Assembly (NCBI RefSeq): GCF_963853765.1
Contig: NC_088861.1
Span: forward strand, 1,116,001-1,180,000
DNA length: 64,000 nt
From: Magallana gigas
Taxonomy: Eukaryota
Direction: 5' to 3'
Within the stretch, counting starts at the first letter, position 1. Every line of letters begins with the position of its first letter. Shown one piece after another: positions 4,605 through 33,084 of this stretch. Made by a program: the position numbers and the translations under genes. A model generated the notes under the pieces. The model was given only the letters and a program-made list of their open reading frames with translations, had not been told where the DNA came from and made no database searches.

Positions 4605-7600
4605 ATGGCTGATTTCGTTGGACGTGTAAAAGAAATCCAAGACATCACTAAGAGAGTGATTTCTCAATCAAGCACATCAACAGTTGTCATAGTGTACGGA
4701 CTTAGAGCAGTAGGAAAGTCTTCCTTAGTTCGTCAAATTTGCCACAGGATCCAGGATTTTGAAGTGGAATGGGTGGATCTAAAAAACGTAGGCGAGGGAA
4801 TCAGAATTTTGGAACCCCTCGCATTATCAATTTTAAAAGAAAGCCTAAGCTTATTACGCCATGAGGACATTCATGAAGTTTTCGACGGTCTGGTTAATAG
4901 AATTTTAACCACACTCAAAAACTCTCAAAAGAAACATCTCATTGTCTTTGACAACATGGAAGACGTTGTGGAGAGCGAACTATCTGTAGACATGGAAAAG
5001 GTGATTTACTCGCTTGCTAGTCTAAAGAACACTCGAATACTGGCCACATCGACAACAAAACTCCCACTTGCTCAACATCCCGATATCTTTGAAATGACAT
5101 TGGGTCCATTGTCGTTAAAAGACTCACAAGACTTACTCTGCAAACTTTGTCCGTCTTTAGAAAAGGACCAAAAATTCTACAAAATTGTCGACTTATGTGA
5201 AGGCTTACCACTTGTTCTTCAGATGACCGCAGCCGAAATTGACGCAGGGGACTTAACTGTGGAAGAGATTATATATCTGCTGAGCCAATGTCGACTGAAA
5301 CTTTTGAGTCAGGAGTTTTATCCAAGTACAGAGAGACTGGGTAAAAAAAATGCATTTTTAACGTCATTTTTGCATATTTACTAAAAAATTTGTAAAGAGG
5401 GCTGGGAGTTAGTGGTCTTTTTAAAACTGTATTAATTTTCTCGAGACGAATCTTTTCAATAGTTTAAGGCAAGAATATCATGTCTCAAAATGTTTAGCTC
5501 GATCTGATGGGCACTTTGTTGACCGTGCATCCTCCTTAAAACGTTTGTCACACAGCTAATTCTGTTTACAGCTCCAGTCTATCTTGCATTCCTTCACCGC
5601 ATGTCTAAACCACTACAGGAGAAGTTGTCTATGATTAATTATATTCCAGGGACATTTGACGAAAAAGAGGTATTGGGAATTATGGGTAAATATCAGTGTT
5701 AAGAATGTAGTAACCTATATGGGAACAATGAAGCCATGGTTTTGAATTTCATTTTATTTAAGAGGGCTTGATGATTGAGTCTATATCAGACTCTATCAAT
5801 TTCCATATAAAGAAGAGCTCTGTAATAGACAGAGCACAATTTTAGATTTAAAAGCAAAAAATTAATTGATTTTTTATGCTGTATAAAATCCATAACTTTA
5901 AAATCATATCAAAACATCTAAGGAAGATCTGATGGTTATTTTGGTGACAATAAAGTTTCCTTAAACATTATCAAGGATACAATTTAAAATTAATGTGTTC
6001 ACTATTGATCTAAGAAAGTCTTGGTTGTGTACAGCTCATATTAATTAGAGTCGTGCTCATTAAATGACCTCAAAGCTTTATCAATGACAACACATTATAT
6101 AATGTTGAAATAGAACTAAACAAGCTCTTATTGTTCACTGAAATCGTCAGTCAATTGATTTTGTTCACTCTAGGTCCAGAGAGCACAAATACTGAACATT
6201 TGAGAAGCGCAATGAATCGCCATGTTATCCAAAACTATGGTGTTCACCAAAGATTTAATATCCATGGAATTCTACGAGACTGTATATCTGAATACATGTT
6301 GATTAAGGACTTACCTTGTGAGTTATTAAATCAGTCTGTTTTTAATACATTTAAAATTAAAATTGGACCACGATGTGATGTGCGTGACCCAAAAACAAAT
6401 GGACTTCTACAACAACATTTTTCAACGTCTTTATAACTGTACATCAAATACATACATTGTATTTTTTTCAATTGCAGTAGTGCGTGGCAGATTTTGCAGA
6501 ATCTTTTCGGAAATCCTTCAAGAGCTCGAGAATAAATCGTTTACACCCGACTACCAGAGGGCGCTTTGTCAACTAAATATGGAACAACAGAACTTCAATA
6601 AACTTCTGACCGATGTTCTTCACTGTACCAGTGATACATACCACATTTTTGTCAACATTGCTTTCTTCCAGTTTAATTTGACCACTCCAGCTTTCTTATT
6701 TAACTCTCCTGACTCATACGGTAGGTAATCCTCAGTCTCAAGCCTCTATTTAGTAAATGGATTGAAAATCTGCCGCAATTTCACTGTGTTTTATATTGTT
6801 TAAGAGATGGGAATGATGTTCTTCAAAGAATGTCTACGCCTTACCCAACAACACAAGAATAAATACGACTCATCCAAAGTCCTTAGTGGTTTAGGAAGTG
6901 TTATTACGAACATAAAAGTAAGATAAATTCGATTGGATTTATTTGCTTGTTTTACTAATAAAAACCTTAATTGAAAAAACAATTAAGAATAAGCTAATTT
7001 ATTGCAAAAACTTGATTTAAACTATGCATCAAGTTGGTAATTTAAGACAGGTGCTGGATATGAGGCAACAAATTTACAATACAGTTTTGGGGGGATAGAA
7101 CATATACAGCAATTCATATACAGGACACTTTTACTCATAAACATCTTCCAGAATCAATAAGAAAACATTTATATAACTATAAATCTTAGTAATGCTTTTT
7201 TATTATAAAACATGTTTGCTCTTTTGTTCTATTAGGGGGACTATATCCTCGGAGAACACCACTATAGGAACGCGTTAAGAATCAGACAGGGTGGCCAAAC
7301 AGTGAGGGACTGTTCATTGGCTTTCCTTTATCAAAGTCTGGGTTGGAACTTGGGATGCCAGGGGAAATCACAAGAAGCTATCGTGTAAGGTTAAGCGGCT
7401 TTATATGTCAAAACCAAAGCAACAAAATACGATGGCGAAAAACAGAACACATTTCTACTGTTGAGAGATAAAGCAATGCCAGTATATTATGGTTACATGC
7501 TTGCTCAATTTATATACTAGTAGTTGGTTCACGTCTGCTTGATTAATAAATAAATAAAAAATAAATTTTCAAATTAGAATATGCCCACCCAGTTGTGATT

Positions 7601-8934
7601 AAAATGCAAAAAATAAATAAAATAAAATAAAATAAAATAAAAACTAGCATCTGTTGAACAACAACTTTTGTTTTAATTTTCTTTTTAACAAAATTTAATT
7701 AAATGCCGGATTTGTAAGATGTGAATATAGTCTTGCTAAATTATTTCATGGCATGATTATGTATTTTTGTATTTCTTATGAGCATACTGTGCTGATCTTG
7801 AAATTCAATATCACGTAATGAACAATTCATTGAATTTATATCAATGTGACGAAATGAAGTTTCTTCTGTCATTATTATATTTTCCAAGAGCATACTGTGC
7901 TGATCTTAAAATTTAACTTCATTATGAAATTTCTTCCGTCATTCGTTATTATATTTTCAGATTTCTTGAAAAAGCCCTAACAATTGAAATAGAACTGGGG
8001 ATGTCTTTAGAAAATCTCATCCTAAACACACTTCAATCCCTTGCCTTATTTCATCTAGATCTAGGTAACCTGTATTTTCGATCCACAAATGAATAAAAAA
8101 GAATATTTAACCTATGATTTTGTTTTACTAATGATAATTAAGAGGCCATATTAAAACGCTTGGTTGATTCTTTTAGATCACATGGACATAGGCGAAAAAT
8201 ATCAACTGGAGGCTTTACGACGCAGACGACAAGCTATTGGGACGGATATGCACCCTATTCTTGGTGCTATGTTGAATAATGTTGGTGAAATGTATCAAAA
8301 GAAGGGGCACATTTCCCAGGCAGAACAATATTTTAGACGTGGGCTTGAAATCAAAACACAAACAAACGCAGCATGGAAAAGCATAGCGTTATCTGAGGTG
8401 AACGTTGCAAACATATTGACTGAATCTGGAAGACCCGACGAAGCGCTGGAAGTCTTGGACAGCAGCATGAAACGGGCGGGGAAATTCCAAAATATTTATG
8501 AGGATATTCGGTCTCTTATAAGCGAGTGCTTTGGAAAAGCTTTTATGGAGAAAAGAATGCACAAAGAAGCTGTTGGGCATTTTCGGAAAGCTGTTCGTCG
8601 TCATGGTTGCAGCCAGTCACGTGATTACGGTGTCCTTAATTCGCAGTGTCTATTAGCCGAATGTTTAATTGGTCTTAAAAAACACGAAGAGGCCATAGAT
8701 TTGATTAATTCTGCACTTCGACAAAAAGATGCAGCAATTCGACACAAACCGTCTACGCTGAATATTCTTCGTTGTTATAGGATTCTTCGAAATGCACAGT
8801 CAGCCATAGGTAAATATTCAGATGCACACATATCGCACGAGCAAGGCTGTCGTGAATATGAGCGACTAAAAGAATGTTTTTATAAAGAAGAAGGCATGGA
8901 GAAAGTTCGGATAGAATGGATTGACCATACATAA
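4605..8934 (+). CDS. STAND (NB-ARC-like) NTPase-TPR protein, NLR-like, copy 1 (subfamily A, soluble), ~786 aa
   Basis: Exons 4605-5340, 5572-5685, 6174-6317, 6478-6720, 6805-6917, 7236-7384, 7961-8064, 8177-8934; all GT-AG, total 2361 nt, open frame. Motifs: FVGRVKEI, Walker A GLRAVGKS, Walker B LIVFDNMED, CEGLPL, winged-helix FNIHGILRDC, TPRs (MLNNVGEMYQKKGHISQAEQYFRRGLEIK). Confidence 0.92.
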
Positions 8935-11364: not shown

Positions 11365-14300
11365 ATGGATGATTTCGTTGGACGTGTAAAAGAAATTCAA
11401 GACATCACTAACAGTCTGATTTCTCGATCAAACACATCAACAGTTGTCATAGTGTACGGACTTAGAGCAATAGGGAAGTCTTCAATAGTTCGTCAAATTT
11501 GCCACAGGATCCAGGATTTTGAAGTGGAATGGGTGGATCTAAAAAACGTAGGTGAGGGAATCAAAATTTTGGAACCCCTCGCATTATCAATTTTAAAAGA
11601 AAGTCTAAGCTTATTAGGCAATGAGGACATTCATGAAGTTTTTGACGGTGTGGTTAAGAGAATTTTAACCACACTCAAAAACTCTCAAACGAAACATCTC
11701 ATTGTCTTTGACAACATGGAAGACGTTATGGAGAGCGAACTATCTGTATACATGGAAAATGTAATTTACTCGCTTGCTAGTCTAAAGAACATCCGAATAC
11801 TGGCCACATCGACAACAAAACTCCCACTTGCCCAACATCCCAATATCTTTGAAATGACACTGGGTCCATTGTCGTTAAAAGACTCACAAGACTTACTCTG
11901 CAAACTTTGTCCGTTTTTAGAAAAGAACCAAAAATTCTACAAAATTGTCGATCTATGTGAAGGCTTACCACTTGTTCTTCAAATGACTGCAGCCGAAATT
12001 GACGCAGGAGACTTAACTGTGGAAGAGATTACATATCTGCTGAGTCAATGTCGACTGAAACTTTTAAGTCAGGAGTTTTATCCAAGCACAGAGAGACTGG
12101 GTAAAAAAAATATAGGCATTTGTTATCTTCATTTTGGTATTTTAACTTAAAATTTATAAAGAGNNNNNNNNNNNNNNNNNNNNNNNNNNNNNNNNNNNNN
12201 NNNNNNNNNNNNNNNNNNNNNNNNNNNNNNNNNNNNNNNNNNNNNNNNNNNNNNNNNNNNNNNNNNNNNNNNNNNNNNNNNNNNNNNNNNNNNNNNNNNN
12301 NNNNNNNNNNNNNNNCTATTCGAAGCTTATATCTTTTGTAATAGTTTGTGGCAAGAATATCAGGTTTAAGGTGGTATGGGACATCTGTCATATTAATGTG
12401 GATTAAAGTGCATTATAATTTAAATACTTTCACCGGTTTAGAATTTTCAAATTTACAATATCTAACCAAAAAAAAAATTGTAAAACCCACAGTGGGATTC
12501 GAACTCCATGACTTAGTTACAGATTCGTAGTAAACCCTCTAACTCACTGCGCTACGCTGTTAGATGACAATATTGGGAAAGAAACTACTTATATAACTGC
12601 ACTTAATTTTATTGTTTATTTCGATAAACAATACGTCACGACATGGAAGTGTCCCATAACACCTTAAAATGTTTAGGTCGATCTGATAGGTACCTTGTTG
12701 ACCGTGCATCATCCTTAAAACGTTTGTCATTCAACTGATTCTGTTTACAGCTCCAGTCTATCTTGCATTCCTTCACCGCATGTCTAAACCACTACAAGAG
12801 AAGTTGTCTATCATTAATTACATTCCAGGAACATTTGATGAAAAAGAGGCATTGGAAATGATGGGTAAATATCATATTTTGTATGTGTTAAGAATGTAGT
12901 AACCTATACGGGAACAATGAAGCCATGGTTTGACTTTCATTCTAAAAGATTTTATCATTTACGAGGGCTGAATGATTGAGTCTATTTCAGACTCTATCAA
13001 TTTCCTTATAAAGAAGAGCTCTGCTTTGTAGAAAGATAAAGAAGAATATTAAACTTCATAGCAAAAAAGTATTTAATTTTTCTTTGCTTTAATTTTTTCT
13101 TTTGCGTTAATTTATTGACCACAAACTTTCCCTAAGCATTATTAAGGATACAACTTTGTTCACTCTAGGTCCAGAGAACTCAAATCACGAGTATTTGAGA
13201 AGGGCAGTAAATCGCCATGTTATCCAAAAATACGATTTTCACAAAAGATTCAATATCCATGGAATTCTTCGAGACTGTATATCTGAATACATGTTGATTA
13301 AGGACTTACCTTGTGAGTTAATGAATTAGTCTGTATATAAATCATTTAAAATTCAAATTGGACCACGATTTGATGTGCGTGAGCCAAAACAAATGGACTT
13401 CTTTAACATTTATGTACGTCTTTATAACTGTACTTCAAATACATGTACATACATTGTAATTGCAGTAGTACGTGGCAGATTTTGCAGAATCTTTTCGAAA
13501 ATCCTTCAAGAGCTCGAGAATAAATCGTTTACATCTGACTACCAGTGGGCGCTTTGTCAACTTAACCTGGAACAACAAAACTTCAATAAACTTCTGACCG
13601 ATGTTTTCCACTGTACCAGTGATACATATCAAGTTTTTGTCAACATCGCCTCCTTCCAGTTTAATACGACATCTCCAACTTTCTTATTTAACTCTCCGGA
13701 CTCCTACGGTAAATGACCGTCAGTCTCAAAGCTCTATTAAGTAGGTTGATTGAAAATCTGCTGCCAAACTCACAGTATTTTATATTGTTTAAGAGATGGG
13801 AATGATGTTCTACAAAGAATGTCTACGCCTTACCCAACAACACAAGAATGATTACGACTCATCCAAAGTCCTTAGTGGTTTAGGAAGTGTAATTACCAAC
13901 ATAAAAGTAAGATTTGAAGAATAAGCTATTGCACAACTAATTTGATTTAAACTATGCCATAAGAACTCTTTTCTTTTACTTGGACAGAAATCAATATTGT
14001 TTATAATAACTTAAAAATCTGAATATAAATACATTAGAAATTAATGACAGGCGCTGAACATGAAAAAGCATTTGGTGACAAACAGATACCGGTATATTAA
14101 CATTAACAGGTGTATGTATGACAATACATTTACAATATAGTTTATTGGAAAGAGAACATATACAGCAATTCATATACAGGACAATTTCACTTATACAGAT
14201 CTACTAGAATCATTAAAAACATTATTAACGTTAGTATATGAATCTAAATAACGCTTATTCGTAATTGAATACATATTTATGTTCTTTTATTCTGTTAGGG

Positions 14301-15930
14301 GGACTATATCCTCGGAGAACGTCACTATAGGAACGCCTTAAGAATCAGACAGAATGGCCCGGCAGTGAAGGACTGTTCGTTGGCTTTCCTTTATCAAAGT
14401 CTGGGTTGGAATTTGGGATGCCAGGGGAAATCACAAGAAGCTATCGTGTAAGGTTAAGCGGTTTTAGAGGTCAAAACCAAAGCAACAAAATACGATGTCG
14501 AAAAACAGAACTAGTTTCTACTGTTGAGTGATTATATACCGGTATTTGAATTGTAAAATATGGTTACATACAAGCTCATTTCATTGAGTTGGTTCATTTC
14601 TATTTGATCAATAAATAAATTAAAATAAATTTTAAAATTAGAATATGTCAACCCAATTGTAATTAAAATGTAAGAATTTCTTAGACAAATAAACACTCAC
14701 TAAGCCTCTGCTAAACGACAACTTTTGTTTTACAGAACCCAGTTTCTATACATTGCTGTACACGAACTTTTCACAAACGCCCCCTGTATAAAAATGATGC
14801 CACTTGTTGAAAACAATAACATCGAGTATATATATATATATATTTTCTAGTATATATTATTCTATTTCCCAAGAGCATACTGTGCTGATATTAAAATTTA
14901 ACTTCATTATGAAATTTCTTCCGCCATTCGTTATTATATTTTCAGATTTCTTGAAAAAGCCTTAACAATTGAGATAGAATTGGGGATGCATTTAGAAAAA
15001 CTTATCCTAAGCACACTTCAATCCCTTGCGCTATTTCATCTAGATCTCGGTAAGCTGTATTTTCATTTCTACATATGAATGAGGAAAAATATTCAATCTC
15101 TGATTTTTCTCTACAAATGGTAATCAATAGGCCATATTAAAACGATTGGTTGATTCTTTTTAGATCACATGGACATAGGCGAAAAATATCAATTGGAGGC
15201 CTTACGACGCAGACGACAAGCTATCGGGACGGACATGCACCCTATTCTTGGTGCTATGTTGAATAATGTTGGTGAAATGTATCAGAAGAAGGGGCACCAT
15301 TCCCAGGCAGAATACTATTTTAGACGTGGGCTCGATATTAAAACACAAACAAACGCTGCATGGAAAAGCATAGCGTTATCTGAGGTAAATGTTGCAAACC
15401 TATTGACTGAAACTGGAAGACCGGACGAAGCACTCGAAGTCTTGGACAGAAGCATGAAACGGGCGGGGGAATTCCAAAATATATATCAAGATATTCGGTC
15501 TCTTATAAACGAGTGTTTTGGAAGAGCCTTTATGGCGAAAAAAATGTATAAAGAAGCTGTCAGACATTTTCGGGAAGCTGTTCGTCGTCATGGAGACAGC
15601 CAGTCACGTGATTACGGTGTCCTTAGTTTGCAATGTCGATTAGCCGATTGTTTAATTTGCCTCGGAAAACACGAAGAGGCCATAGATTTGATTACATCTG
15701 CACTGCGACAAAAAGATGCAGCAATTAGACACAAACCTACAACACTTACTATTCTTAGTTGTTACCGGATTCTTAAAAATTCACAGTTAGCCATAGGTAA
15801 ATTTTCAGATGCACACATATCGCACGAGCAAGGATGTCGTGAATATGAGCGACTAAAGGATTTATTTGAAGGCTTGGGTAACAAAGAAGGACTGCAGAAA
15901 GTTCGAACAGAATGGACTAACCAAAGATGA
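11365..15930 (+). CDS. STAND (NB-ARC-like) NTPase-TPR protein, NLR-like, copy 2 (subfamily A, soluble), ~789 aa
   Basis: Exons 11365-12100, 12751-12864, 13169-13312, 13466-13708, 13794-13906, 14299-14447, 14946-15049, 15164-15930. Exons 1-7 have the same lengths as in copy 1; total 2370 nt, open frame. Walker A GLRAIGKS, LIVFDNMED, CEGLPL, IHGILRDC. Intron 1 contains the N gap. Confidence 0.9.
12164..12315. other. Assembly gap (152 N) inside intron 1 of STAND copy 2
   Basis: Run of N in the sequence. Confidence 0.99.
12366..12667. mobile_element. Non-autonomous DNA transposon (MITE) with TTAA target duplication and GG...CC termini (Kolobok-type), carrying a tRNA-derived segment
   Basis: TTAA(12366-69)-ggtggtatgggaca ... 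tgtcccataacacc-TTAA(12664-67). The homologous site in copy 1 intron 1 (gcaagaatatcatgtctcaaaatgtttag, ~5469-5497) is empty. An internal antisense tRNA-like piece at ~12496-12578 has A-box tagcgcagtgag and B-box gttcgaatcc. Confidence 0.8.
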
Positions 15931-16100
15931 TAACGACAGTTCAACCTGCGATTGAATTCCAGAAAACAAAGAGTTTAAATTTTTTAAATTTTACTTTATT
16001 ATGTGCAGACATTTTATAACAATACTTTCCATTTTCATTAATGCACTCTTTACATTGGAGGCGCGTTTTGTAGGGTCGTCCGGGACAAAATATCGTCGTG

Positions 16101-17790
16101 ATGGACGCCAACTATCAAGATTTGCAGTGCGCGGATCTAAAGCATATTCTGAAATCTGAAGGCATTCCTTTTTCAAACAAAAGAAAGCAAGATTTAGTTG
16201 AATTATGTGAGAGCGCGGATGCTCTTAATTCGCCCGGAATTTATCAGAACGATAGCGAGAAAAAGGCTTTAATCAAGAGACGGACGGTTCGGGGAAAACA
16301 ATTATCAACATCCATGTTACTGCCTTGGAATCGTCTGGAGTCGTAATCTGGCTACCATCCTAGATAACGATACCTTTGATGTGACATATTTTCTCCAGAA
16401 CTACTGCGGATGGTCCGAAGAACGCCTACATACAAGAAAATCGGACAAAGGCTACACGCTGCAATGTTAACTGGCCACATTAATGATGTCACGATGGCAA
16501 TTTTAGGTACTTATAAACTTCGTAAAGCATAGCATTTTATATTGACACTCAAATATGACCCACGTGTTCTTTCTAAATTTTCTTGTCAAAATTGTTATAA
16601 AAGAATCGAAGATATGATCCCTACTTGTACTGGAAAATTCGGATTGAGATGCCGAATTTCCTCAACCCAAATTTTTATCATTAGAACGTCAGATCTGCAA
16701 CTTTATTATGAATGGTTTACTCAGCAGTATATGAATGTTACAACAGAAACACAATGTTGTTGATCAACAGTTTTGTACTCAGTAAACAGTGACTGGAAAA
16801 GTCTTACCAAAACATACCTCTATTGATTTATCAAACGTGATGAGACACAGTCATGCAACAAATATGGTTTGTCAATAACAATGTCATCAAAAAGGAATCT
16901 AGAATATTTGAACAGAAAATAATTTACCACTTTCATTTCAGATGAAGATTTGTACAATGTAAAAGGCAGCAAATGTGTACCTGAAACAAACAATCCAGTG
17001 AACCCTATATCCCATTGATTCTGATTTAGAGATCATGACACATATTTTCAGCTGAATGTACATGCGTTGCGTAAGTTTATTTTCTAGTTTTTCACTTACC
17101 TGTATATCTTATTGAAGCAAAGCTGGTCGTACTAATTTACTATTATTCTTCATAAACACATTATTAATCTTAACTGAAAGGATGAATCATGTAAGCATGT
17201 TGTTGACCTACTGTTTGGCAGTATAGATCAAGTCACTTCCATGGAAGATCGAAGTTCAAATGGAGTTACTGATACTGCAGCATCATTTTAGGATAAACCA
17301 CGGAAAGTATGCAGACAACTGCCAGTTCATTACTTAGATATCAGGTATGATACTATATTTTTAAATGTTCTCTTATTGGATTAAATGAATCCCCCTTTTA
17401 TATAAACCGTTGTCAGTTCGACTGTCCCTTTCTGGCTGATTGCATGTATTGTACTTATAGTTTTAATTTGATGCCAATCCTTCTATTCATACGAAAACCA
17501 AAAAAATCTTACAGAATGAATAAGGAAACTGAATTGTTTATTATTATTTAACAAAGAATAAGATTTTGCAATTACAATGTGATTTATTTAGAAACTTACT
17601 TATAATGCGTTATTATAATTCCATATAAATTACAGGACTGTCATGAATGTACCAGATAAACCATGACCATCTGAAGATTCTGGTTAATTACCACTTAAGT
17701 CTTCAGATTTGAATATAGAGTCATTGGAGTCATTGGAGAAGAATATTAGTCAAGTCTTAAAGAAAAGCAAAACATCAGCATTGTATACGA
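16101..17790 (+). pseudogene. Degenerate SAP-like + SWIM zinc-finger gene of a DNA transposon (resembles the KolX-type second ORF of Kolobok-like elements)
   Basis: MDANYQDLQCADLKHILKSEGIPFSNKRKQDLVELC (SAP-like). After frameshifts: WSRNLATILDNDTFDVTYFLQNYCGWSEERL and KCVPET, then the SWIM signature AECTCVA|intron ~17071-17180|DESCKHVV. Several stops and frameshifts. Family assignment is from recall. Confidence 0.55.
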
Positions 17791-19730: not shown

Positions 19731-20133
19731 GAAACATATTTCATTATTTCATCAGACAGCTTTTCTTGACTCCAACCACATTTTGCAATGAGTCAATTTA
19801 CAGATTATTTACTTTTAATATAGTTTATGGACATGTAAAGGTAAATAGTGTTATAACAAAAATCCGACCAACAACTTTTAGGCTTGAAATTAACTGACAG
19901 GTTTGCAGTTTCTTACGAGGAAAAAATACTAAAAAATCCGTTCATTTTCAACGCAGTTTTTCTTTTAGACTATGGAAGGTGTTTAATTGGCGAGTACCAC
20001 TATATTTTTGCCAATACGAAAAAATGGCAAAGGAACCTGACAGACAACAATAACCTGCTCTTTACCAAGGCATATCATACATAGATGGAGCTTGGGATGT
20101 CAGGGGAAATCATTAGATGTAAGGTAAAAACGG
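19731..20133 (+). pseudogene. Relic of an additional STAND-TPR duplication unit (decayed exon 6 plus flanking DNA)
   Basis: tggagcttgggatgtcaggggaaatca...gtaaggtaaaaacgg (20086-20133; WSLGCQGKS plus donor) matches the exon 6 end of copies 1/2 (tggaacttgggatgccaggggaaatca...gtaaggttaagcgg). gaaacatatttcattatttca at 19731-51 is identical to 9694-9714, with further similarity to ~10030. Confidence 0.7.
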
Positions 20134-22621: not shown

Positions 22622-25600
22622 ATGGCTTCCTTTATCGGCCGATTATCTGAAATTCAGGCCCTGACGGACACATTTCAGGAGCATAAAGTGGTTGTAATTC
22701 GAGGATTCAAAGGGATTGGAAAATCAGCACTTGCAAGGGAGTTTTGTAAACATTTTCAACGGCCGTTTTACTGGATTGACCTAAGGAATGTTACAATCGC
22801 CAATGAAATTCTGCAAACATTAGTTCGTGTTTTCTTGCAAGAAGCAATTGTATTGGACGATCCAAAATCCTTACTTCAGTTGATTTGTACAAATATTTCA
22901 GGAAGAAGATATCACTTAGTTATTGCATTTGACAATGCAGAGGATGTTGTTAAAGACGCCGATTGCGATTTGTTTGTTGAAATTCTACGTTCACTTTCAA
23001 ACTTGAACAATACAAGCACAGTGGTGACAACCACTGTGAAAATACCAGTCCAAAATGATCAAATCGGCGACTTTTTCTTACAAGAACTGTGTTTTGAGGA
23101 TTCATTTGATCTTTTGAAGAGCGTATGTCCAACACTGACAGACACGAAAAAGATTTCTGCAATTATAAATCTCTGCGAAGGTATTCCGTTGGCATTGCTT
23201 TTGGCAGGTGGAGAAATTGGACCATTGGACGTAGATGAAGTTATCTATCTTCTTAGTCATTACAGACTGAAAGTTTTAAGCTCAGAATGCTATCCAAAAG
23301 AAGAGCAAATAGGTAAGAATCATCAATATTCTTAAGTATTCGAAACAGTGAGAAAATTATTTTCAAAAATCACATTTACTTCACTACAGTGTATTCGGTA
23401 AATGCATACAAAATGGTTATTCGGGAAATGCTTACAATGCTTACGTAAGTCATTTTAATTGTAGAGCCGATATACAAAGGTTTTTTAGACAGACTTCCAA
23501 AGGCTTTGGAAGAAAAGCTGACTGATTTGAATTACATCCCGGGCTCGTTTAATTTAGAGGAAGCTATATCAGTATTAGGTATAAATAGTGAATGGGAAAG
23601 GGCGAAAAAAATTGTGTGGATTTTATTTGAAATACTTTTGTTTTTTAAATTCCTTTGTGTGTGATTTAGATTCAGCAGAAGACGAAGCTAAGGATATAGT
23701 GCAAACGTTTTTTGATCGTCACTTGATCTCGCAAATCTCGGATGACAGACTTGATATCCATGGAATAATAAGAGATTGCTTGAAGGAATATTTTAAAATC
23801 AAGAATATCAAAGGTTTTTCTTATAGTTGAAAATAATACATGATATTACAATGAAAAAGTATAGCCTGTGTAACCTTATTTTATTAGATTCAACTCAAAT
23901 TCAATTGAATGAAAAGTAAAATAAGAAACTTACTAAATGTCTGAATTAGTAGTATAATTAATTACTTCAATAAAAAGTAAGACTGTTTTACTGAAATGTT
24001 TTCCTCAAATGACATGTTCATCAGTCATTAAGAAATCAATCTTTCAATAATTAATTATAAGGTTATTAATCTTTTTCTCTGCAGAAGTTCGCGCTCGCTT
24101 TTGCAAAACATTTTCAGCCATACTGAAACAAATTGAAAAGAAAACTACCACTCAAGAATATGCTGACGCCATATGTACACTTAATTTGGAATATCAAAAC
24201 TTCCAGAAGCTTTTCACTGACGTCATATACTGCACCGAGGACACATATCACGTGTTCATTGATTTAGCAGCAACGACAGTAGCAGGAGGTTCCATAATCT
24301 TTACTACCATGGCAACGTATGGTAAATGTTAATTCTAGAATCCCTGAAAATTATGAGTGACTTATTCTAATCCGTTTTTGTTCGTCTTGTGTTCAACATT
24401 TAAACATTTTTAAATCAACTGTAAATATATATATTCCAAAAAATGTCCATAGGTCCGAGATTAGTTTTTCATCCCACAGAATGGACATATGTTGGCCTTG
24501 ATTTGATTTTTAAAGAAATACTGCATTTCTTTTAAGAAGAACGGTGTCAGGTTAACCTGTTGACACTGTTGTAAATAGGTTTTTTTTTTATAAACCAACA
24601 ATTAAATTAGACTTGAAATGTTTTTTGTTGACGTATTGAACAGTTTCAAGTATGTGTGACTATGTGTACTCCCAAGACCATGTGTACTCCCAAGACCATA
24701 TACTGATTTACCATTTTACCAACCATATATTTTACCGTTGGAAAGAGATTATATTTTTATTGAAACTTTAAAAATGTTAAATAAATACTACAGATACCAA
24801 CACTTACCTAAAATGTTTTGAATATAGAAGGTTGAAATGCTATGTAGCCACTTACAAATATATAAAATACAAAAAGCAAGGATGCATGTGTTTTCTTTAG
24901 GGTTGCAAACGCAAAGTACTAATTTTGACTAATTAGAAATTAATTCAGGGAGGGGGGTGCCAAGAATTTTTTTTTTAAACTTTTAAATGTGAATTTAATA
25001 TCGATCTGGAAAGCGTATCCCAATTTACATTCTAATGTATTTCAATCTACATTTTGATGTGATCGAGGCGATTGTTTGTAATTTTAAATGATGGAGTAAA
25101 AAAATATGATATGGTGTTATTCACCAACATTTTAATGTTTCCCTCTTGTATTGTAATCTGTTACATTTAAGGTTTATTGACATAAGTTGTTTTTGACAAA
25201 TGTACATGTACCGTCTTTCTCAAGCTTACCTGTAGCCATCCGAAAAGTTTATGGCTTAACCGGCCCCTGTACATTAAATTGAGTTTTGTTCATTATCAAT
25301 AATAATGGATAGCTTTTCCAGTCAATTATGTGAAAGAATAAACGCGTAAGCAACCTTTAGATTGTGATTAAAATTACAAAGCAACAAAACATACGAAAAC
25401 CAACATAACAAAAATGTTTGATTAAATACTATAGCCAATGACACCAGTTATCATACCGATGATGGTGATTTTTTCAGATCTAGGAATTCAATTCTACGAG
25501 AATTGTCTGAAAAAGGCAATTGAATTCAAAGAGGAATTGGACGAGGCCAAAGTTTTAACTGGATATGGCAAAATTTTGACGAACATTAAAGTAATACAAT

Positions 25601-27219
25601 CTTACATGTATGGTTGTATGGAAGTAAAGCGTATTTTGTTTCTCTTTTCACACAACTTCATATCAAATATAAAAACTTCTATATACTGTTTTACTTGTTT
25701 GTAAAGGGCGATTGTGTAGAAGCAGAAAAGAAATTTCAAGAAGCTATGGACATAAGAAAACGATTCCCAAATAAGAGAGACTATTTTCTTGCTTTTCTCT
25801 GTCAAAGTTACGGATGGAATCAGGGAGCACAGGGACAATTTGTAAACGCTATAAAGTGAGGATTAAACTTGTATCCTAGAATAAAACTTAAGTAGTAATC
25901 AATTAATTTCTTTTAAATACAGTTTTTATAATAAAAAATAATCAGAACGCAGATGTAAAAGATAATACATTTCAAGATCAATTCTATTTTTGATAACTTC
26001 TACTGAACAAAGTTTTTCTAATTAAGATATCAAAGTTTGGGTATAATTGGATGTTCAAATGTAAAGTTTACGCAACAAAAAAATAATTTTGTAATTTTAA
26101 GAATATTGAAAGAGGCTTTTGAGGTGGAACAAGAGCTTGGGATGCACTACGAAACCCTGATTCTGCAGACTATGCAATCTCTTGCAATCTTTTACAATTT
26201 TTCTGGTAAGACAAGTTATGCACTTTTAAATTTTGATATCTTATATTTGTGATATATTTTGCACATGATATTTAATTTTTCGTGCCTATTTAGGTCATAC
26301 TGAAAAAGGAGAGCCATTGCAACTAGAGGTTCTTAAGCGTAGACTTCATGTCATTGAAACAGAATATCATCCAATTATTGGGTCTATAATGAACAATATG
26401 GGTGTGCTATACGAAAGAAAGGAAGATTTCGCCAAAGCTGCTGAATACTACAGAAAGGGACTTGCCATAAAAGAGCAGACCAATGCACCCATCAAGGCTA
26501 TTATGATATCCGAAAGTAATGTTGCAAGAATTTTACTTGAACTCAATCAGAATGAGGAGGCAATTGAATTAGTAGAAAATGGTTTCAAACGGCTGGAAGA
26601 TATTCCAGGTCTGTTCACAGACACAAGATCATTACTTTTGGAGACACTTGGTAAAGCTCACATAAAAATGGGAAACTTTCGAGAAGCCGCCGTGGCTTTG
26701 AAAAGAGCAATTTCTTGTAGATGCAAAGGTGCTCCAAATGATAATTCCATTTTAAACCTAGTGTGTCTGTATGCAGAAAGTCTCCTTGCATTGTCAGAAT
26801 ATGAAAAGGCTGCACAGGAGATACAAAAAGGTTTCCGTCTAAATGAAACCTTGATCATTAATTATCCAACAAATACAAATATCGCTCTTGCGTATGAAAA
26901 GCTATTGGAAGCTTATTTCGGGTTGAAGAGAAGAGAAGATTTAGACAGAACATATGAAGCAGGCAGGAACGAATTTTTTCGCTTAATTAGAGTCTATGAA
27001 GAAATGAACAACTTCAACAAACGAGAAGATTTGTTAACTCGTTTTCAACGGTTCAAAACACGATACTTGGGAATGTTAAAAGAATTAACTAACGAAATCC
27101 ATGAAGAAAGCCAAGGTACAATAAATGACACGGTCATTTTAATTACCTTAATTGGATTAAAGTTTGTATGTCTTGCATTTTTTTGCATGTGTATCAAATC
27201 AAAAGGAAAAACAAATTAG
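22622..27219 (+). CDS. STAND (NB-ARC-like) NTPase-TPR protein with C-terminal tail anchor, copy 3 (subfamily B), ~825 aa
   Basis: Exons 22622-23312, 23465-23578, 23670-23813, 24085-24321, 25478-25590, 25707-25855, 26102-26205, 26294-27219; total 2478 nt, open frame, same intron phases as copies 1/2. FIGRLSEI, GFKGIGKS, VIAFDNAED, CEGIPL, LDIHGIIRDC, TPRs, C-terminal VILITLIGLKFVCLAFFCMCI-KSKGKTN. Confidence 0.92.
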
Positions 27220-27864
27220 GCATTAATTATTTCTAATTATTTGACTTATATTATAGCTATTAATCTCTGTTTGACAAAACATACAGGATTATCGGGGTTA
27301 TAAAACAGTTTGTGCAAATTGTACTTTCCAGAAAAATGATTAAAAAAGTGATAGTTATATACAATGATTATTAAAAGAGACCTATTGAACAAACTTCTGA
27401 GCGTGTTTATTGAATATTTAAAAACTAACATGGTATTTACTTTGAATGTAAAGTACTAATTGAGAACAATTTTCTTCTCCATACATAACGGCGTATAACC
27501 AATTTTATTTAAAGATTGTGTCCCCTTTCAAAGAATACCGTATGGGGTGCCTAATGGGAAGCGACTTGCTCAGAGCTACCGAAGTTATTTAATTGGATTA
27601 GCCATGTATATGAGAGCTACAATTTTGTAATGTTTTGTTCAGTATGCTAGAAAATATTACAGTTCTAAAGGAAATATATATTACCGAATGTATTATCTGT
27701 ACTTTTACAGAATGGACAGATATTAAGAAAGATTATATTTAAAAAAGTACCATTTAATACATTATCGAAAATGTTCGAGATGAGGTGATAACGACCGTAA
27801 GTAATTTCCTTAATAGGGGATCCGCATGTCACCGACTATGAATATGAATATGAAATTATTTTGG

Positions 27865-27886
27865 CTATCTATCTATCAATCTATCA

Positions 27887-27950
<64 letters not shown>
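27865..27950. repeat. (CTAT)n microsatellite
   Basis: About 21 tandem ctat units with two caat variants. Confidence 0.95.
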
Positions 27951-27951
<1 letters not shown>

Positions 27952-29678
27952 CATGTATATGTTATAAATAAAATAATTATATGAATATGAAGATACACTT
28001 TACCTCCAATTGTCCATTTAATTGCAATCACTGTACGCATATTTTTCCGTAAAAATGGTTCTGAAATGCAAGCTGAATCAAACAATACAAATAGAAAACT
28101 CTGGCTCTTAATTGTTACAATATTTTCAAAATGAAGTAAAACCTACACAAACCCATATAAAGAGGTACAAATTAACCTATAAATGCATTTATTGCATGTG
28201 TCTTTTAATTAAAGTTACTGAATGACATAATGGAAAGTTTATGCATGTTTATGATTAGATGATTAAAAGCGTTTGCATGATACCGAAAAAGTCATTCTTT
28301 AAGGCAAAAGTAAAATTTACAATTCTGCTCTATAAAATGCGTGTTAAGGTCAGTTGTCAATTTTAATGATTTTAAATAACTGATTTTGTTTTAATTATAA
28401 AGACCTTTCATTCAAAGTAATAAATAAAATGTGTCATTTCTCCATAATTTTCTGGGTTTTTTTTTTGTAAACACCGTTTGAGCCATTCACTGTTTATCGA
28501 GAAGCAAGGAAATGATAAAGTTTAAGATGAAAGAACAGAGAAATCAGAGAATTAATGCACAATGTCATCACATGAACACATACACACATTTTCTGCAAAT
28601 ATTGAGGAAATGTGATCCTTGAGATGATTTCCGGCAACGTTAGAATTAATAGATTAAGTTTAACATGTTATTGTAAAATGAAAACTATAATATATAGTGC
28701 GTTTTCCGAAAATATGTCAAGCATGTTACGAAATACAGTAAAACATTTTAAGGACGTACAATCACATAATTGATAAAATCATGTTTTGTTCTAGAATCCT
28801 AACACCGAAGAAAATTAAACGTTATTGACAACAACATTATAATATTTCTTTTGATTGCTTTTAGAAATTTAAGTATATATGATTTGACAGTTTGTAACTT
28901 TCAAAGTATCATGTAGCTATGGTAGGTAAAAGTTTATAGCAAAATTCATGAAGGTCACAGAGCAGCCACGCGTGTGTGCGTGTGCATATGTCTTCGGGCT
29001 TTCACGGTGTCAGGGGGTCGAAGTTTGTGGCCCCCGCAAACTTGAGCCAGTTGATTATTTTTAATCACAAAAATAAACTTCCACTCCCTTTTCTCATAGT
29101 AATAATTTGAACAATTTCATTTTCAAAAAAAAAAATCAACTAAGTTTCTGTAATGAATAATGTTAACTTCTTTATTTCTACGAGTCATCAAAGTGTGTTT
29201 ATTAATACATTTCACTGTGTTTTTAACCTCTTATAATTAATTAAACATGCAACCATGCATTTACATTATGATTATTTTTCTTTGGCATTCAATCCCTTAA
29301 TTCATCGATATAATTGGTAAAATAATGCAAATCATCGAATATAACATCAATACGCACATACGCACTGGTATAGGTAAAATGCTGACGCAACATTTTGGGG
29401 CAGAAAAATGGGTAGAAAACGTTGTCTTATGACTTAATACATCAGTTCATCTTAATTAAAAGTGAACTGCTTTATCTGAATTCCGGTCACAGACCACATG
29501 GCTATAAAAGACGTTTCAAAACACAACTCATTGTTTCAAAATGCAGTAACATGTTTAAAGTGTTTAAAATTATTAGGTATGCTCTAAAAATAACTTGGGG
29601 AATTTACAAGTGGCAATCGAATTAAATACCCAATATCTACATGTAGTTCAAAGTCAAACAAATATCGTCGTCTTGAAA

Positions 29679-32600
29679 ATGGCGTCTTTTGTTGGTCGAT
29701 CTACCGAAATTAAGGCTCTCATAAACAAAATACAACACCATAAATTGGTTGTTATTCGAGGATTTAAAGGAATTGGAAAATCGGCAATTGCGAGGGAGGT
29801 TTGTAAGCATATCCAACAACCATTTTATTGGATTGACCTTCGGAATATTACGATCGCCGATGAAATGCTTCAATCATTGGTTCGTGTTTTCATTCAAGAA
29901 GCAGTTGTCCTGGATGATAAACAATCACTGCTTAGAGCTATTTGTGAAAACATCGTAGGAAAAGGACATCAGATATTAATTGTTTTTGATAATGCAGAAG
30001 ATCTTGTTAAAGACAATGATTGTGGTCTGTTTGTTGAAATCTTACTTTCACTTTCAAACTTGATCAATACAAACATATTGGTGACAACGACTGTAAAAGT
30101 ACCTGTTCAAAAGGATAAAATTGTCGATTTCTTCGTTAAAGAATTATGTTTTGAGGATGCATTTGATCTTTTGAAGAGCGTTTGTCCAACACTGACAGAC
30201 ATAGAAAAGATTTCTGCAATTATAAATCTTTGCGAAGGCATTCCGTTAGCATTGCTTTTGGCAGGTGGAGAAATTGGACCATTGGACGTAGATGAAGTTA
30301 TATATCTTCTTAGTCATTACAGACTGAAGATTCTAAGCTCAGAATGTTATCCAAAAGAAGAACAAATCGGTGAGAAGTTTAACATTTCTGTACCTTGTAA
30401 TGGAGTATCTAAATTATTGAAAATATTTCCATGAGCTTATAAAACCTTCTTTCATGCCCGTTTTCACGTTCACTATTTTTGCTCTATTTCCTCGATACAC
30501 TGCATATAAACGTCACTTTCCTTGTAGAACCCTTGTATAAAAGCTTTTTAGACAGACTTCCAACGGCTTTGGCCGAAAAATTCGCAGTTCTGAATTACAT
30601 TCCGGGCTCGTTTGATTTAAAGGAAGCTTTATCAGTATTAGGTACCAAAGTAGTGGATGATTTTTTTTCTTCGAATTTTTAATATCAAATTCATATTTGC
30701 ATGCGAAAACATCTATTGTTGTCATTTAGGACCTTCGGATGATTTAGAAAAAGAAGATACAATGGAAACATTTTTTCATCGCCATTTGATCTCTCAGACC
30801 ACAGGGGACAGATTTGATATCCATGGAATTTTGAGAGATTGCTTAAAGGAATACTTTAAAATCAAGGATATTAAGGGTTAGTATGTAGTAGTAGGGCTAA
30901 CAAATAAACAACAATTCAAAGATTTGTATATAAACTAGAGATGCATATACGACTATTCGTCAGTATATTAAATTAGTCAATTAAGTCAGTAATAAATTTT
31001 CTTTTTGCAGAAGTCCGAGCTCGCTTTTGCAAAACCTTTTCAGCCATACTGAAACAAATTGAAAAAGAAACCACAACTAAAGAATATGCTGATGCCTTGT
31101 GTAAACTTAATGTGGAGTATCAAAACTTCAAGAAGCTTTTTACTGACGTCATTTACTGCACCGAGGACACATATCACGTGTTTATTGATTTAGCGGCAAC
31201 TACAGTAGCAGGAGGGGCCATCATGTTTACAACAATGGCAACGTATGGTACATGCCGGTCTTTTACCGTATTTCGTCTGTTTTACATTAAATACTTTTCG
31301 TACAAAAATTAGTTTATACATCTGTAGGATTAAATGTATGAAATGCCGTGTGTTTAATTTCATTTGTCGTATTATTGAATACTTTCCCAACATTTTTTGT
31401 TTCAGAAATTGGTATTCGGTTTTATGAAAATTGTCTGAGGAAAGCTATAGAATTCAAAGAGGATTTGGATGAAGCAAAGGTGTTGACTGGATATGGCAAG
31501 ATCTTGACAAACATAAAAGTACAGAACCTATATATTATAATCACTAGAATAACATATATGTATTTTATTGAATATTGTCTTTATCTACAGCAGTTATATT
31601 TTAAGATTTTTCATAATTGTGGAGAAATTTCTTTTTGTCATGAAAGTAATTTTATCTTTATTAAAGGGAGATTGTGTTCAAGCAGAAAGTAAATTTCAGC
31701 GAGCTATGGACATAAGAAGACGACATCCAAATAAGAGGGACTATCATTTTGCTTTTCTCTGTCAAAGTTATGGCTGGAATCAGGGAGCGCAGGGGAAATA
31801 TGTTAACGCTTTGAAGTAAGACTTAACATTTTTTTCTTACATAAAGCCACCTACTTTATTTTAATCAAATGAAAATACATGTCCATTTCAAGTTAAAAAC
31901 TGGTTTTGTCGTCCTTATGTCGGCCTATTGTGAGCTGATCAGGAATAAGTCATACGATCATATTTAATCTGATTTGTATGTTTTTATTACAAGAATTTTG
32001 GGAGAAGCCTTTAAAGTAGAACAGGAGCTGGGGATGCACTACGAAAACCTTATTCTGCAGACCATGCAATCTCTTGCAATCTTTTACAATTTCTCTGGTG
32101 AGACAACAAATTCATATCAAGTTCTTGTATTTTTTCTTCATATTTTATACGCATGTTTAATATTTCCTTATCATTCTAGGACATATTGACAAAGGAGAAC
32201 CGCTGCAACTAGAAGTTTTGAAACGAAGACTTCATGTCATTGGGACAGAAAATCATCCAATTATAGGGTCTATAATGAACAATATGGGTGTGCTATACGA
32301 AAGAAAGGAAGATTTCGCCAAAGCTGCTGAATACTACAGAAAGGGACTTGCCATAAAAGAGCAGACCAATGCACCCATCAAGGCAATAATGATTTCCGCA
32401 CATAATGTCGCGAGGAGTTTACTTAAACTTAAACAAAATGATGAGGCCATTGAATTGATACAGAATGGTTTTAAACGTCTTGAAGATTTCCCGGATCTCT
32501 TTAGCGATACAAGATCATTACTATGGGAAACAATGGGCACAGCTTACATGTCATTGGACAATTTCAAAGAAGCGTCATTGGCCTTTAAAAAGGCCATATA

Positions 32601-33084
32601 TCTTAGAACTCAAACTTCACCACATGATAATTCAATTTTAGGATTAGTGTGTTTGTATGCGAAAAGCCTCCTGGCAATGTCTGAATATACAAAGGTTATT
32701 AGAGAGGTGCAAAAAGGCATGCGTCTCAGCGAATCTATAAGAAAAAATACACCCACAAATCCGACAATTATTTTTACATATGAGAAATTAATGGAAGCTG
32801 AGTTTGCTTTAAAGAGAAGAAATGATCTAGAGAAAACATACATGGCAGGCAAGGACGAGTTTTTTCGCTTAATAAAAGTTTATGAAGAGTTGAAAAACTT
32901 TAACAAACGAGAAGATGTGTTATTACATTTCCAGCGTTTTAGAGCAAGATATTTGGAAATGTTAAGAGAACTAAACAACGAAATTCCCAACGAAATTGAC
33001 AGCGTCGTTTTGATATCCCTTCTTGGTTTAAAGATTGTGTGCATCACGTTTCTGTTTCTGTGCATGAAATCAAAAGAGAAATAA
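29679..33084 (+). CDS. STAND (NB-ARC-like) NTPase-TPR protein with C-terminal tail anchor, copy 4 (subfamily B), ~819 aa
   Basis: Exons 29679-30369, 30528-30641, 30730-30876, 31011-31247, 31406-31518, 31667-31815, 31994-32097, 32180-33084; total 2460 nt, open frame. FVGRSTEI, GFKGIGKS, LIVFDNAED, CEGIPL, FDIHGILRDC, C-terminal VVLISLLGLKIVCITFLFLCM-KSKEK. Confidence 0.92.

Follow-up and report, generated by a model that had tools for sequence, protein, structure and literature searches.

The 64,000-nucleotide stretch of the Magallana gigas genome analysed here (the window) carries four intact head-to-tail genes, g1 to g4, on the + strand at 4605-33084. The locus very probably represents four tandem paralogues of a small, CARD-less 'Apaf-1-like' family in which an NB-ARC STAND NTPase is fused to a kinesin-light-chain-type TPR array, and its proteins belong to an already known NB-ARC-TPR kind of that name. 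The oyster retains a switch of the Apaf-1/CED-4/R-protein type in an effector-less form, one of its two subfamilies being predicted to be membrane-anchored. Because Apaf-1 itself has been reported lost in molluscs and annelids by two phylogenetic studies (PMC11463336, PMC10959488), this family gains in interest.

Gene structure and expression of the array

The genes fall into two subfamilies. Subfamily A comprises g1 (4605-8934, + strand, 786 aa; exons 4605-5340, 5572-5685, 6174-6317, 6478-6720, 6805-6917, 7236-7384, 7961-8064 and 8177-8934) and g2 (11365-15930, + strand, 789 aa; exons 11365-12100, 12751-12864, 13169-13312, 13466-13708, 13794-13906, 14299-14447, 14946-15049 and 15164-15930). 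Subfamily B comprises g3 (22622-27219, + strand, 825 aa; exons 22622-23312, 23465-23578, 23670-23813, 24085-24321, 25478-25590, 25707-25855, 26102-26205 and 26294-27219) and g4 (29679-33084, + strand, 819 aa; exons 29679-30369, 30528-30641, 30730-30876, 31011-31247, 31406-31518, 31667-31815, 31994-32097 and 32180-33084). The limits of the array are exact, position 4605 opening the ATG of g1 and position 33084 closing the stop codon of g4.

All introns are GT..AG, the phases deduced from exon lengths are 1,1,1,1,0,2,1 in each of the four genes, and every model has an open frame with a single, terminal stop codon. The initial annotation had described four head-to-tail genes with eight exons each, these phases and open frames. 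Its gene structures are confirmed by our independently spliced models, by the 100% identity of the g2 and g3 models to the Magallana gigas RefSeq proteins XP_065926657.1 (P0190) and XP_011456017.3 (P0153), and by RNA for g4. It had also described two close pairs only distantly similar to each other, in agreement with the protein identities of 87% for g1/g2, 76% for g3/g4 and 38-39% across the pairs.

Intron 1 of g2 contains an assembly gap (a run of N at 12164-12315, not filled) which starts 64 nt 3' of the donor (12100|12101), exon 2 following from 12751. The flanks of this gap are collinear with g1 intron 1, the left flank matching g1 5291-5399 and a 137-nt stretch that runs up to and into g2 exon 2 matching g1 5484-5620; between the aligned flanks, g2 intron 1 has extra repeat-like sequence absent from g1. 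The coding sequence of g2 is untouched by the gap, since transcript-derived 789-aa proteins (for example P0198, 99.5% identical to g2) join exons 1 and 2 in frame. Further along the window, a TRIM-like RING/B-box gene lies on the - strand at 44312-49117.

Expression is established for at least g2, g3 and g4. For g4, RNA contigs from three runs (X5, X6 and X7) contain all seven junctions as GT..AG joints, and in the stranded polyA raw reads of run X20 the first mate falls on the - strand only, which indicates + strand RNA for this gene. Several transcript-derived 789-aa proteins represent g2 at 96-99.5% identity. The expression level of the array is low, yet it is detected in RNA runs of several studies. 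RNA support for g1 is the poorest part of the gene-model evidence: this gene is absent from every run on record as RNA, and 0.22-0.30 of its sampled words (exon share 0.55) occur in runs only guessed to be RNA.

The missing g1 transcripts would be expected if one or more of the copies, g1 above all, were young non-functional duplicates turning into pseudogenes. The last ~40 codons of g1/g2, where dN/dS is near or above 1, point in the same direction, as does an orphan NB-ARC exon on the same chromosome, degenerate and containing a stop codon, which implies that copies of this family can decay. Against such decay, the g1 frame is open over 786 codons with its splice sites intact, up to 0.30 of its words occur in the runs guessed to be RNA, and the overall dN/dS of 0.31 for g1/g2 means that both copies have been constrained since their duplication. 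We therefore regard pseudogene formation as very unlikely and treat all four genes as intact paralogues.

The NB-ARC module, the TPR array and the C-terminal tail

Walker A and B, GxP and winged-helix HxxxRD motifs followed by TPRs had been noted in each gene, and all of them were found again. The Pfam NB-ARC model (PF00931) matches exon 1 of g1 to g4 at 38.5, 34.7, 38.9 and 36.9 bits (gathering cut-off 23.5), and full-length proteins score 35.8 and 29.7 bits. Walker A reads GxxxxGKS in the four genes and GxxxxGKS/T in the family alignment. Walker B reads hhhFDNxED, in which hhhFD is conserved across the family and N-x-E-D, instead of a second Asp, is a variant form. The GxP (GLPL) motif is CEG[LI]PL[AV]L, its G and P being invariant in 27/27 family sequences. 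The winged-helix motif is IHGI[LI]RD; the form DIHGILRD is kept across the family, though five of the 27 aligned members, none of them from oysters, have Gln, Asn or Tyr in place of His.

The sensor-1 Arg (RNBS-B 'TTR', at the end of strand beta-4) is not present, and the family has a conserved hhhTST(T) at what we take to be the same position, placed through the AlphaFold strand 131-137 and the general form of the motif rather than through an explicit Apaf-1 alignment. The catalytic site thus departs from canonical NB-ARC twice, with TST for the sensor-1 Arg and FDNAED for the hhhhDD Walker B. Because of these departures, ATP hydrolysis or gamma-phosphate sensing could differ or be lost.

When compared with solved structures, the profile of the nucleotide-binding module retrieved plant NB-ARC proteins (1e-11), PH0952 (1.4e-10) and Apaf-1 (3.4e-8); none of the matches at E <= 0.01 was a NACHT NLR. 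The AlphaFold model of g3 (pLDDT 89.5, pTM 0.79) is divided into NBD (residues 1-156), HD1 (157-222), WHD (223-312), HD2-like helices (313-390), TPR (391-755) and a long terminal helix (758-822). Its best structural match is CED-4, on which residues 1-362 superpose with Z 26.6 and an rmsd of 3.3 A over 320 residues, followed by active Apaf-1 (residues 1-398, Z 25.8). The model also superposes on the NRC4 (Z 24.9), G10, RPP1 and WRR4A resistosomes, with Z of 23-25 for resistosome protomers. It is closer to open/active NB-ARC conformations than to resting ones; this open-like state may be a modelling artefact, and it carries no information on regulation. Taken together, the Pfam matches, the structure-profile searches and the fold establish g1 to g4 as STAND NTPases of NB-ARC type with C-terminal TPRs, as the initial annotation had held.

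The NB-ARC module is followed by about eight TPR hairpins of kinesin-light-chain type. Pfam TPR_12 matches exon 8 at 51-80 bits in the four genes (71.5 for g1, 79.6 for g2 and 51 for g4), and among sequence matches to the TPR part kinesin light chain 1 ranks first (5e-38). No N-terminal effector domain is found: the proteins begin 27-31 residues ahead of the P-loop, directly with NB-ARC, and a Pfam search of the proteins gave no CARD, WD40 or LRR.

The subfamily B proteins end in a hydrophobic segment of 21-22 residues (Kyte-Doolittle 2.6-2.7) followed by 5-7 mostly basic residues. In g3 this predicted tail anchor covers residues 797-818 (27130-27195, + strand; 19-residue Kyte-Doolittle maximum 2.59 at residue 798) before the basic tip KSKGKTN, and in g4 residues 794-814 (33004-33066, + strand; maximum 2.69 at residue 794) before KSKEK. 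Such a single hydrophobic segment, lying less than about 30 residues from the C-terminus, with a short polar tail and without a signal peptide, suggests that g3 and g4 encode tail-anchored membrane proteins. All oyster B-clade proteins have an equivalent segment, which neither subfamily A nor the non-oyster relatives share.

Family history and selection

The family is small, ancient and mollusc-wide. An exon-by-exon six-frame search of the Magallana gigas genome, which gives a lower bound on copy number, recovered g1 to g4 and the orphan exon; in the six-frame Pfam search no clear NB-ARC match lay outside the four genes. The same tandem array is found in Ostrea edulis and Saccostrea echinata. 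Further members of the family come from Pinctada, scallops, Mercenaria, Mya, unionids, Solemya, Haliotis, Gigantopelta, a cuttlefish, a crinoid and amphioxus, each species carrying one or a few copies. The amphioxus relative is a DED-NB-ARC-TPR protein and another relative has a Death domain. In the family tree, which broadly matches mollusc phylogeny, the oyster proteins form one clade with the A/B split inside it, and identity between mollusc classes is 25-35%. The dS values are about 0.2 for g1/g2 and about 0.8 for g3/g4. The oyster ancestor very probably already had an array of one A gene and one B gene, each of which then duplicated late, in the Magallana/Crassostrea lineage, giving g1/g2 and g3/g4.

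The family evolves under purifying selection, and pairwise and window tests show no fast-diversifying sensor. The overall dN/dS is 0.17-0.31 in pairwise tests and does not exceed 0.47 in any TPR window, while the TPR is as variable as the NTPase or less so, both between alleles and between species.

These results bear on the proposal, made in the initial annotation, of a duplicating, diversifying receptor cluster, namely an intracellular immune surveillance locus whose TPR arrays would sense pathogens and diversify in the manner of fungal NB-ARC-TPR NLRs or Avs. A STAND NTPase joined to a repeat sensor is indeed the architecture of plant, fungal and bacterial immune receptors, the fold resembles that of resistosomes and, to a lesser degree, that of Avs3, tandem duplications have occurred, and the TRIM-like gene is nearby. 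Full-length variants inside 90% clusters also differ at up to 7.5% of residues, although part of this 'allelic' diversity may be between species. However, the genome holds only four genes and an orphan exon with no sign of expansion, the array is shared with other oysters, the tree broadly tracks species relationships, and neither the dN/dS values nor the allelic and interspecies variation single out the TPR. In addition, the effector domain is missing, no PADLOC Avs model matched, and our literature search returned no paper naming these loci. We consider this immune reading unlikely. Of the first interpretation of the locus, the STAND-TPR identity stands and g2, g3 and g4 are expressed, whereas the picture of duplicating genes with a diversifying TPR sensor is not supported. 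The oyster locus, being small, old and constrained, counters the expectation that STAND-TPR clusters are always fast-evolving loci of immune receptors.

Purifying selection and low-copy retention across molluscs would also suit a scaffold with a housekeeping or cell-biological task, for instance an adaptor for cargo, cilia or organelles like nephrocystin-3 or kinesin light chain; its NTPase would control assembly and take no part in defence or death. The kinesin-light-chain-type TPRs, the low expression detected in RNA runs from several studies and the predicted membrane tether of subfamily B, as expected of an organelle adaptor, all agree with such a scaffold. Three observations speak against it: the NTPase is NB-ARC and not an NPHP3-type module, the relatives carrying a DED or a Death domain tie the wider family to death-fold signalling, and 25-35% identity between mollusc classes is high divergence for a housekeeping protein. 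A scaffold is accordingly possible but, in our view, doubtful, and we retain the assignment to an 'Apaf-1-like' NB-ARC-TPR family.

Relation to known systems and a putative mode of action

Apaf-1 and CED-4 share with the oyster proteins an NB-ARC composed of NBD, HD1, WHD and HD2. Apaf-1 proper has an N-terminal CARD and C-terminal WD40 repeats, whereas the oyster proteins have neither and carry TPRs in the WD40 place. CARD, DED and Death domains are all lacking in the oyster and other mollusc proteins because these start at the NBD. The oyster proteins further differ from Apaf-1/CED-4 in the TST for the sensor-1 Arg, the FDNAED Walker B and the predicted tail anchor of subfamily B. 'Apaf-1-like' NB-ARC proteins are known from sea urchin, amphioxus and Nematostella (Zmasek et al. 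2007, PMC2246300; Krasovec et al. 2023, PMC10959488), and invertebrate homologues with TPRs in place of WD40 repeats are already on record (PMC2246300; PMC10959488).

The NACHT/NB-ARC-TPR 'Nod-like receptors' of cnidarians (Hydra, Acropora; PMC7642931) likewise belong to the STAND NTPases of animals and end in TPRs; they are known from genome catalogues, and their function is putative. Cnidarians have tens to hundreds of such genes with varied effectors (PMC7642931), while the oyster has four genes and zero effectors. Animal NLRs sensu stricto are NACHT-LRR proteins; in the array a NACHT score was obtained only for g3 and g4, where its 15-25 bits stay under the cut-off of 26.7, and no LRR was present. 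Plant NB-ARC receptors (NRC2/3/4, ZAR1, Roq1, MLA13) are the best profile matches to the nucleotide-binding module and have the GLPL motif and the His at the MHD position in common with it, but carry LRR sensors and CC or TIR effectors, both lacking in the oyster proteins. Fungal NB-ARC-TPR NLRs (PMC4986451) and bacterial Avs (Avs3, PDB 8DGC; among the Foldseek matches at E 4e-8) join a STAND NTPase to a TPR sensor, as the oyster proteins do. They differ in having N-terminal effectors and, in fungi, highly variable repeats, whereas the oyster TPR is under purifying selection. An assignment to Avs was rejected, PADLOC giving generic TPR and PDC-S models only and the N-terminal domain being missing.

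The best whole-protein Foldseek match (E 1.4e-13) is PH0952 of Pyrococcus horikoshii (PDB 6MFV), a STAND protein with a TPR sensor. It is also matched by profile at 5.6e-21 and has the same module order as the oyster proteins, the nucleotide-binding module and then TPRs. PH0952 is archaeal and only ~16% identical, and it superposes poorly as a whole (rmsd 27 A), showing that its domains are arranged differently.

By extrapolation from the NB-ARC family, the resting protein would be an ADP-bound closed monomer in which the winged-helix His (IHG, at the MHD position) and the TPR arm hold the NBD. A protein or peptide ligand in the TPR superhelix would unlock the NBD, nucleotide exchange would follow, and the NBD-HD1-WHD modules could then form a ring. 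Since the proteins carry no effector of death-fold, TIR or enzymatic type, the output would have to come from partners recruited to the oligomer. Subfamily B might assemble on a membrane, given its C-terminal tail anchor. Any role in immunity or cell death is putative, the immune part being an analogy. A bolder version, which we consider a long shot, is that this CARD-less family is the only Apaf-1/CED-4-type platform retained by molluscs, with the tail-anchored oyster B proteins assembling on a membrane, possibly the mitochondrial outer one, and using a putative adaptor to trigger cell death or innate signalling. The B tail anchor has moderate hydrophobicity and a basic tip. Such a protein would be an apoptosome- or MAVS-like platform of new design.

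Nephrocystin-3 and kinesin light chain have TPR_12/TPR_10-type arrays like those of the oyster proteins, but kinesin light chain has no NTPase. Nephrocystin-3 was rejected as an identity at 12.6-17.7 bits for NPHP3_N (cut-off 24.8) and 17-34 bits for TPR_NPHP3 (cut-off 100). The names that pipelines give to these genes mirror TPR similarity only. Mislabelling as nephrocystin-3-like or kinesin-light-chain-like had been predicted from the sequence, and such names do occur: older UniProt records carry the names 'Kinesin light chain 3' and 'Tetratricopeptide repeat protein 28', and a Mercenaria relative is called 'nephrocystin-3-like', while current RefSeq entries read 'uncharacterized protein'. 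Behind these labels, the annotation hides concrete, expressed candidates for work on mollusc apoptosis and immunity.

Gene models and transcripts of the array

We modelled g1-g4, the four head-to-tail NB-ARC-TPR genes, from plus-strand stop-to-stop frames, which form four repeating sets between 4.5 and 33.1 kb. Compatible GT/AG pairs were enumerated and the junctions common to the copies were retained. The resulting open frames encode 786 (g1), 789 (g2), 825 (g3) and 819 (g4) residues in 8 exons each, all introns are GT..AG, and exon lengths give the phases 1,1,1,1,0,2,1 in all four genes. The array runs from the g1 ATG at 4605 to the g4 stop at 33084. This independent splicing agrees with the initial annotation, which had described four 8-exon genes with shared phases and open frames over this span, and had sorted them into two close pairs only distantly similar to each other. 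Protein identity is 87% between g1 and g2 (subfamily A) and 76% between g3 and g4 (subfamily B), versus 38-39% from pair to pair.

The g3 and g2 models are identical to the Magallana gigas RefSeq proteins XP_011456017.3 (P0153) and XP_065926657.1 (P0190), respectively. All seven g4 junctions are present as GT..AG joints in RNA contigs from three runs. In stranded polyA reads over g4 the first mate falls on the minus strand only, indicating a plus-strand transcript; depth in this sample is low (92 reads among about 12.9 million read). RNA support for g1 is weak. The g3-g4 spacer (27220-29678) is covered throughout by RNA contigs and stranded reads at one quarter to one half of exon depth, and a single contig runs unbroken from this spacer into g4 (28610-30278). 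The spacer RNA points to read-through or to a long UTR, either the 3'UTR of g3 or the 5'UTR of g4. In contigs from two sequencing runs (X6 and X7, at 30293-30642), g4 retains its intron 1. Four further RefSeq isoforms of g2 (P0191-P0194, 550-666 aa, named 'tetratricopeptide repeat protein 28') have exon 1 swapped for a short alternative N-terminus, so that the NTPase domain is wholly or largely missing. If these isoforms are real, g2 also makes TPR-only products.

A run of N (12164-12315) interrupts intron 1 of g2, starting 64 nt past the donor (exon 1 ends at 12100 and exon 2 starts at 12751). Exons 1 and 2 are joined in frame in the RefSeq protein and in several transcript-derived 789-aa proteins; the gap is therefore intronic and has no bearing on the reading frame. 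Its left flank can be aligned to g1 as far as the gap edge, the final 137 nt leading up to and into exon 2 align with g1 5484-5620, and between these flanks g2 carries additional repeat-like sequence that g1 lacks. About 350 nt to the right of the gap (12316-12662) have no counterpart in intron 1 of g1, and their translation (...GFEL..VNPLTHCAT..) recurs close to the orphan exon described below, in the stretch L003. This segment looks like a dispersed oyster repeat, which may explain the assembly break.

Tandem copies of this kind are easily mis-merged by gene predictors, as seen in older or automated models. The top representative match of our searches, P0001 (UniProt K1PPD3), was dropped as a reference because it is an old chimeric model in which g1 residues 414-745 are fused to the start of g2. 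Crassostrea angulata XP_052709264.1 (P0179, 1138 aa) tracks g3 to residue 765 and then runs on.

Domain architecture and predicted fold

Pfam NB-ARC matches exon 1 of g1-g4 at 34.7-38.9 bits against a cut-off of 23.5, and TPR_12 matches exon 8 at 51-80 bits, with the full-length proteins behaving alike; NACHT stays under its cut-off in all four. When the profile was limited to the nucleotide-binding module, it retrieved plant NB-ARC proteins (1e-11), the archaeal STAND-TPR protein PH0952 (1.4e-10) and Apaf-1 (3.4e-8, 330 positions), and no NACHT NLR was among its matches. The TPR part is nearest to kinesin light chain 1 (5e-38).

The fold of g3 was modelled with AlphaFold from a 27-sequence family alignment (mean pLDDT 89.5, pTM 0.79). 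The model comprises an alpha/beta NBD (residues 1-156), HD1 (157-222), a winged helix (223-312), an HD2-like helical block (313-390), a TPR region of about 17 helices in roughly eight hairpins (391-755) and a terminal helix of 65 residues. Foldseek with this model returned PH0952 first (E 1.4e-13), followed by Apaf-1, the NRC3, NRC4, ZAR1, Roq1 and Sr35 resistosomes, CED-4, Avs3 and MalT. A PADLOC scan of the oyster proteins matched no Avs model. With VIA-align, residues 1-362 superimpose on CED-4 (Z 26.6, rmsd 3.3 Å over 320 residues) and residues 1-398 on active Apaf-1 (Z 25.8).

Across the family Walker A reads GxxxxGK[ST], Walker B hhhFDNAED and the GLPL motif CEGLPLAL, and DIHGILRD places a His at the MHD position. 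Pfam, profiles, fold and motifs thus bear out the STAND NTPase with Walker A/B, GxP and HxxxRD motifs and TPRs that had been read from the sequence. At sensor-1, a conserved TST stands where an Arg (TTR) is expected; with the TST and FDNAED variants, hydrolysis may or may not work as in canonical enzymes. No N-terminal domain precedes the module, the Met lying 27-31 residues ahead of the P-loop in all mollusc members; RefSeq models begin at the same Met as ours.

The subfamilies differ at the other end. The C-termini of g3 and g4 carry a hydrophobic segment of 21-22 residues followed by a short basic tip. The segment is common to all oyster B-clade proteins and is absent from subfamily A and from non-oyster relatives.

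Relatives, copy number and history

An exhaustive exon-1 profile search of cluster representatives gave 165 matches at E <= 1e-10 and 7 at E <= 1e-30, and among the 150 matches listed many have a length of 720-840 aa and start with the NB-ARC module at residue 1. Named members occur in oysters (Ostrea, Saccostrea, Crassostrea virginica), other bivalves (Pinctada, scallops, Mercenaria, Mya, unionids, Solemya), gastropods (Haliotis, Gigantopelta), a cuttlefish, a crinoid, amphioxus and a soft coral. The amphioxus relative has the order DED-NB-ARC-TPR and another relative Death-NB-ARC, which places the wider group in the 'Apaf-1-like' set (Zmasek et al., PMC2246300; Krasovec et al., PMC10959488). 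Such a death-fold head, present in these outgroup relatives, is missing from the mollusc branch.

In a maximum-likelihood tree from a quick search, in which two long outgroup branches meet, the oyster sequences form one clade (SH-aLRT 100) that contains the A/B split. The sisters g1 and g2 parted later than the divergence from Ostrea and Saccostrea, and the sisters g3 and g4 later than that from C. virginica. Pteriomorph, heteroconch/unionid and gastropod sequences cluster roughly in line with species relationships. Genes of the same family also stand head to tail in other oysters, three in O. edulis and two in S. echinata.

Searched with the exon-1 profile and with Pfam NB-ARC, the oyster's own 564 Mb genome yielded g1-g4 only, copy counts from these six-frame, exon-by-exon searches being lower bounds. 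The wider nucleotide-binding-module profile added one orphan exon on the chromosome of the array, 21.8 Mb distant (C9:22926096-22926818, plus strand; L003:5096-5818). This exon is NB-ARC-like and divergent, with 22-30% identity to family members. We rejected it as a fifth gene because it is interrupted by one TAA stop, its Walker B is degenerate (IFHHDHQE), it has GVPSAI instead of GLPLAL, and no TPR exons follow within 14 kb downstream; its sequence is probably that of a relic.

NB-ARC proteins of invertebrates with TPRs replacing WD40 repeats have been on record since 2007 (PMC2246300), and NACHT/NB-ARC-TPR genes have been catalogued in Hydra and Acropora (PMC7642931). Searches with gene and UniProt identifiers, and with the TPR protein 28 name together with gigas, found no paper on these loci. 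In RefSeq all four genes are labelled uncharacterized protein; the older names 'Kinesin light chain 3' and 'Tetratricopeptide repeat protein 28' are of the TPR-based kind that had been predicted for automated pipelines. NPHP3 Pfam models remain under their cut-offs for the oyster proteins, so nephrocystin-3 and kinesin-light-chain labels reflect TPR likeness only. Apoptosis-gene surveys report Apaf-1 to be absent from molluscs (PMC11463336), and the available part of them does not mention the NB-ARC-TPR mollusc family. The four genes are the only clear NB-ARC genes found in a genome without Apaf-1; a second notable point is that one subfamily, B, is tail-anchored.

Constraint and possible function

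Selection was assessed pairwise by Nei-Gojobori dN/dS per region and in 60-codon windows. For g1/g2, dS is 0.21, dN 0.063 and omega 0.31; for g3/g4 the values are 0.78, 0.135 and 0.17. No 60-codon window in the TPR exceeds 0.47, and dN/dS comes to about 1 only over the last 11-38 codons of g1/g2, from very few changes. Between g3 and g4, residues of about 168-225 and 522-611 show a dS of 0.24-0.34 against 0.6-1.9 elsewhere, a pattern that suggests gene conversion between the B copies. Full-length variants in 90% clusters, the transcript-derived ones being of unassigned species, depart from the copies in the window at as many as 7.5% of residues, with the highest density of variant sites in the NBD, HD1 and tail rather than in the TPR. 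Mean pairwise identity among 21 members is 26% in the NBD, 33% in the N-terminal half of the TPR and 27% in its C-terminal half. Taken with the distribution of variants, these values indicate that the repeat region is no hypervariable sensor.

The data support well a conserved array, real and expressed, of tandem NB-ARC-TPR STAND genes that lack an effector. If it works like Apaf-1, CED-4, plant NLRs and PH0952, the resting protein would be an ADP-locked monomer whose TPR captures a ligand, followed by nucleotide exchange and ring assembly. The one line of evidence for an immune-receptor reading is the architecture. A family of four genes, sequence constraint (omega 0.17-0.31), a TPR that is not hypervariable and a missing effector weigh against the diversifying TPR-sensor receptor cluster initially proposed. 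A small, constrained, effector-less family could still have a conserved part in signalling for defence or cell death; a housekeeping scaffold is about as likely.

Two other open frames lie in the window. One on the minus strand, of 1602 aa (44312-49117), matches RING (zf-C3HC4, 38.6 bits) at its N-terminus and also B-box (33.8 bits), which makes it a TRIM-like E3 ligase whose tail is very long. The g2-g3 spacer holds a plus-strand open frame of 90 aa (16074-16343) with a HeH/LEM (SAP-like) match of 22.1 bits, under the cut-off of 28.9, which is probably a transposon fragment or a decayed gene.
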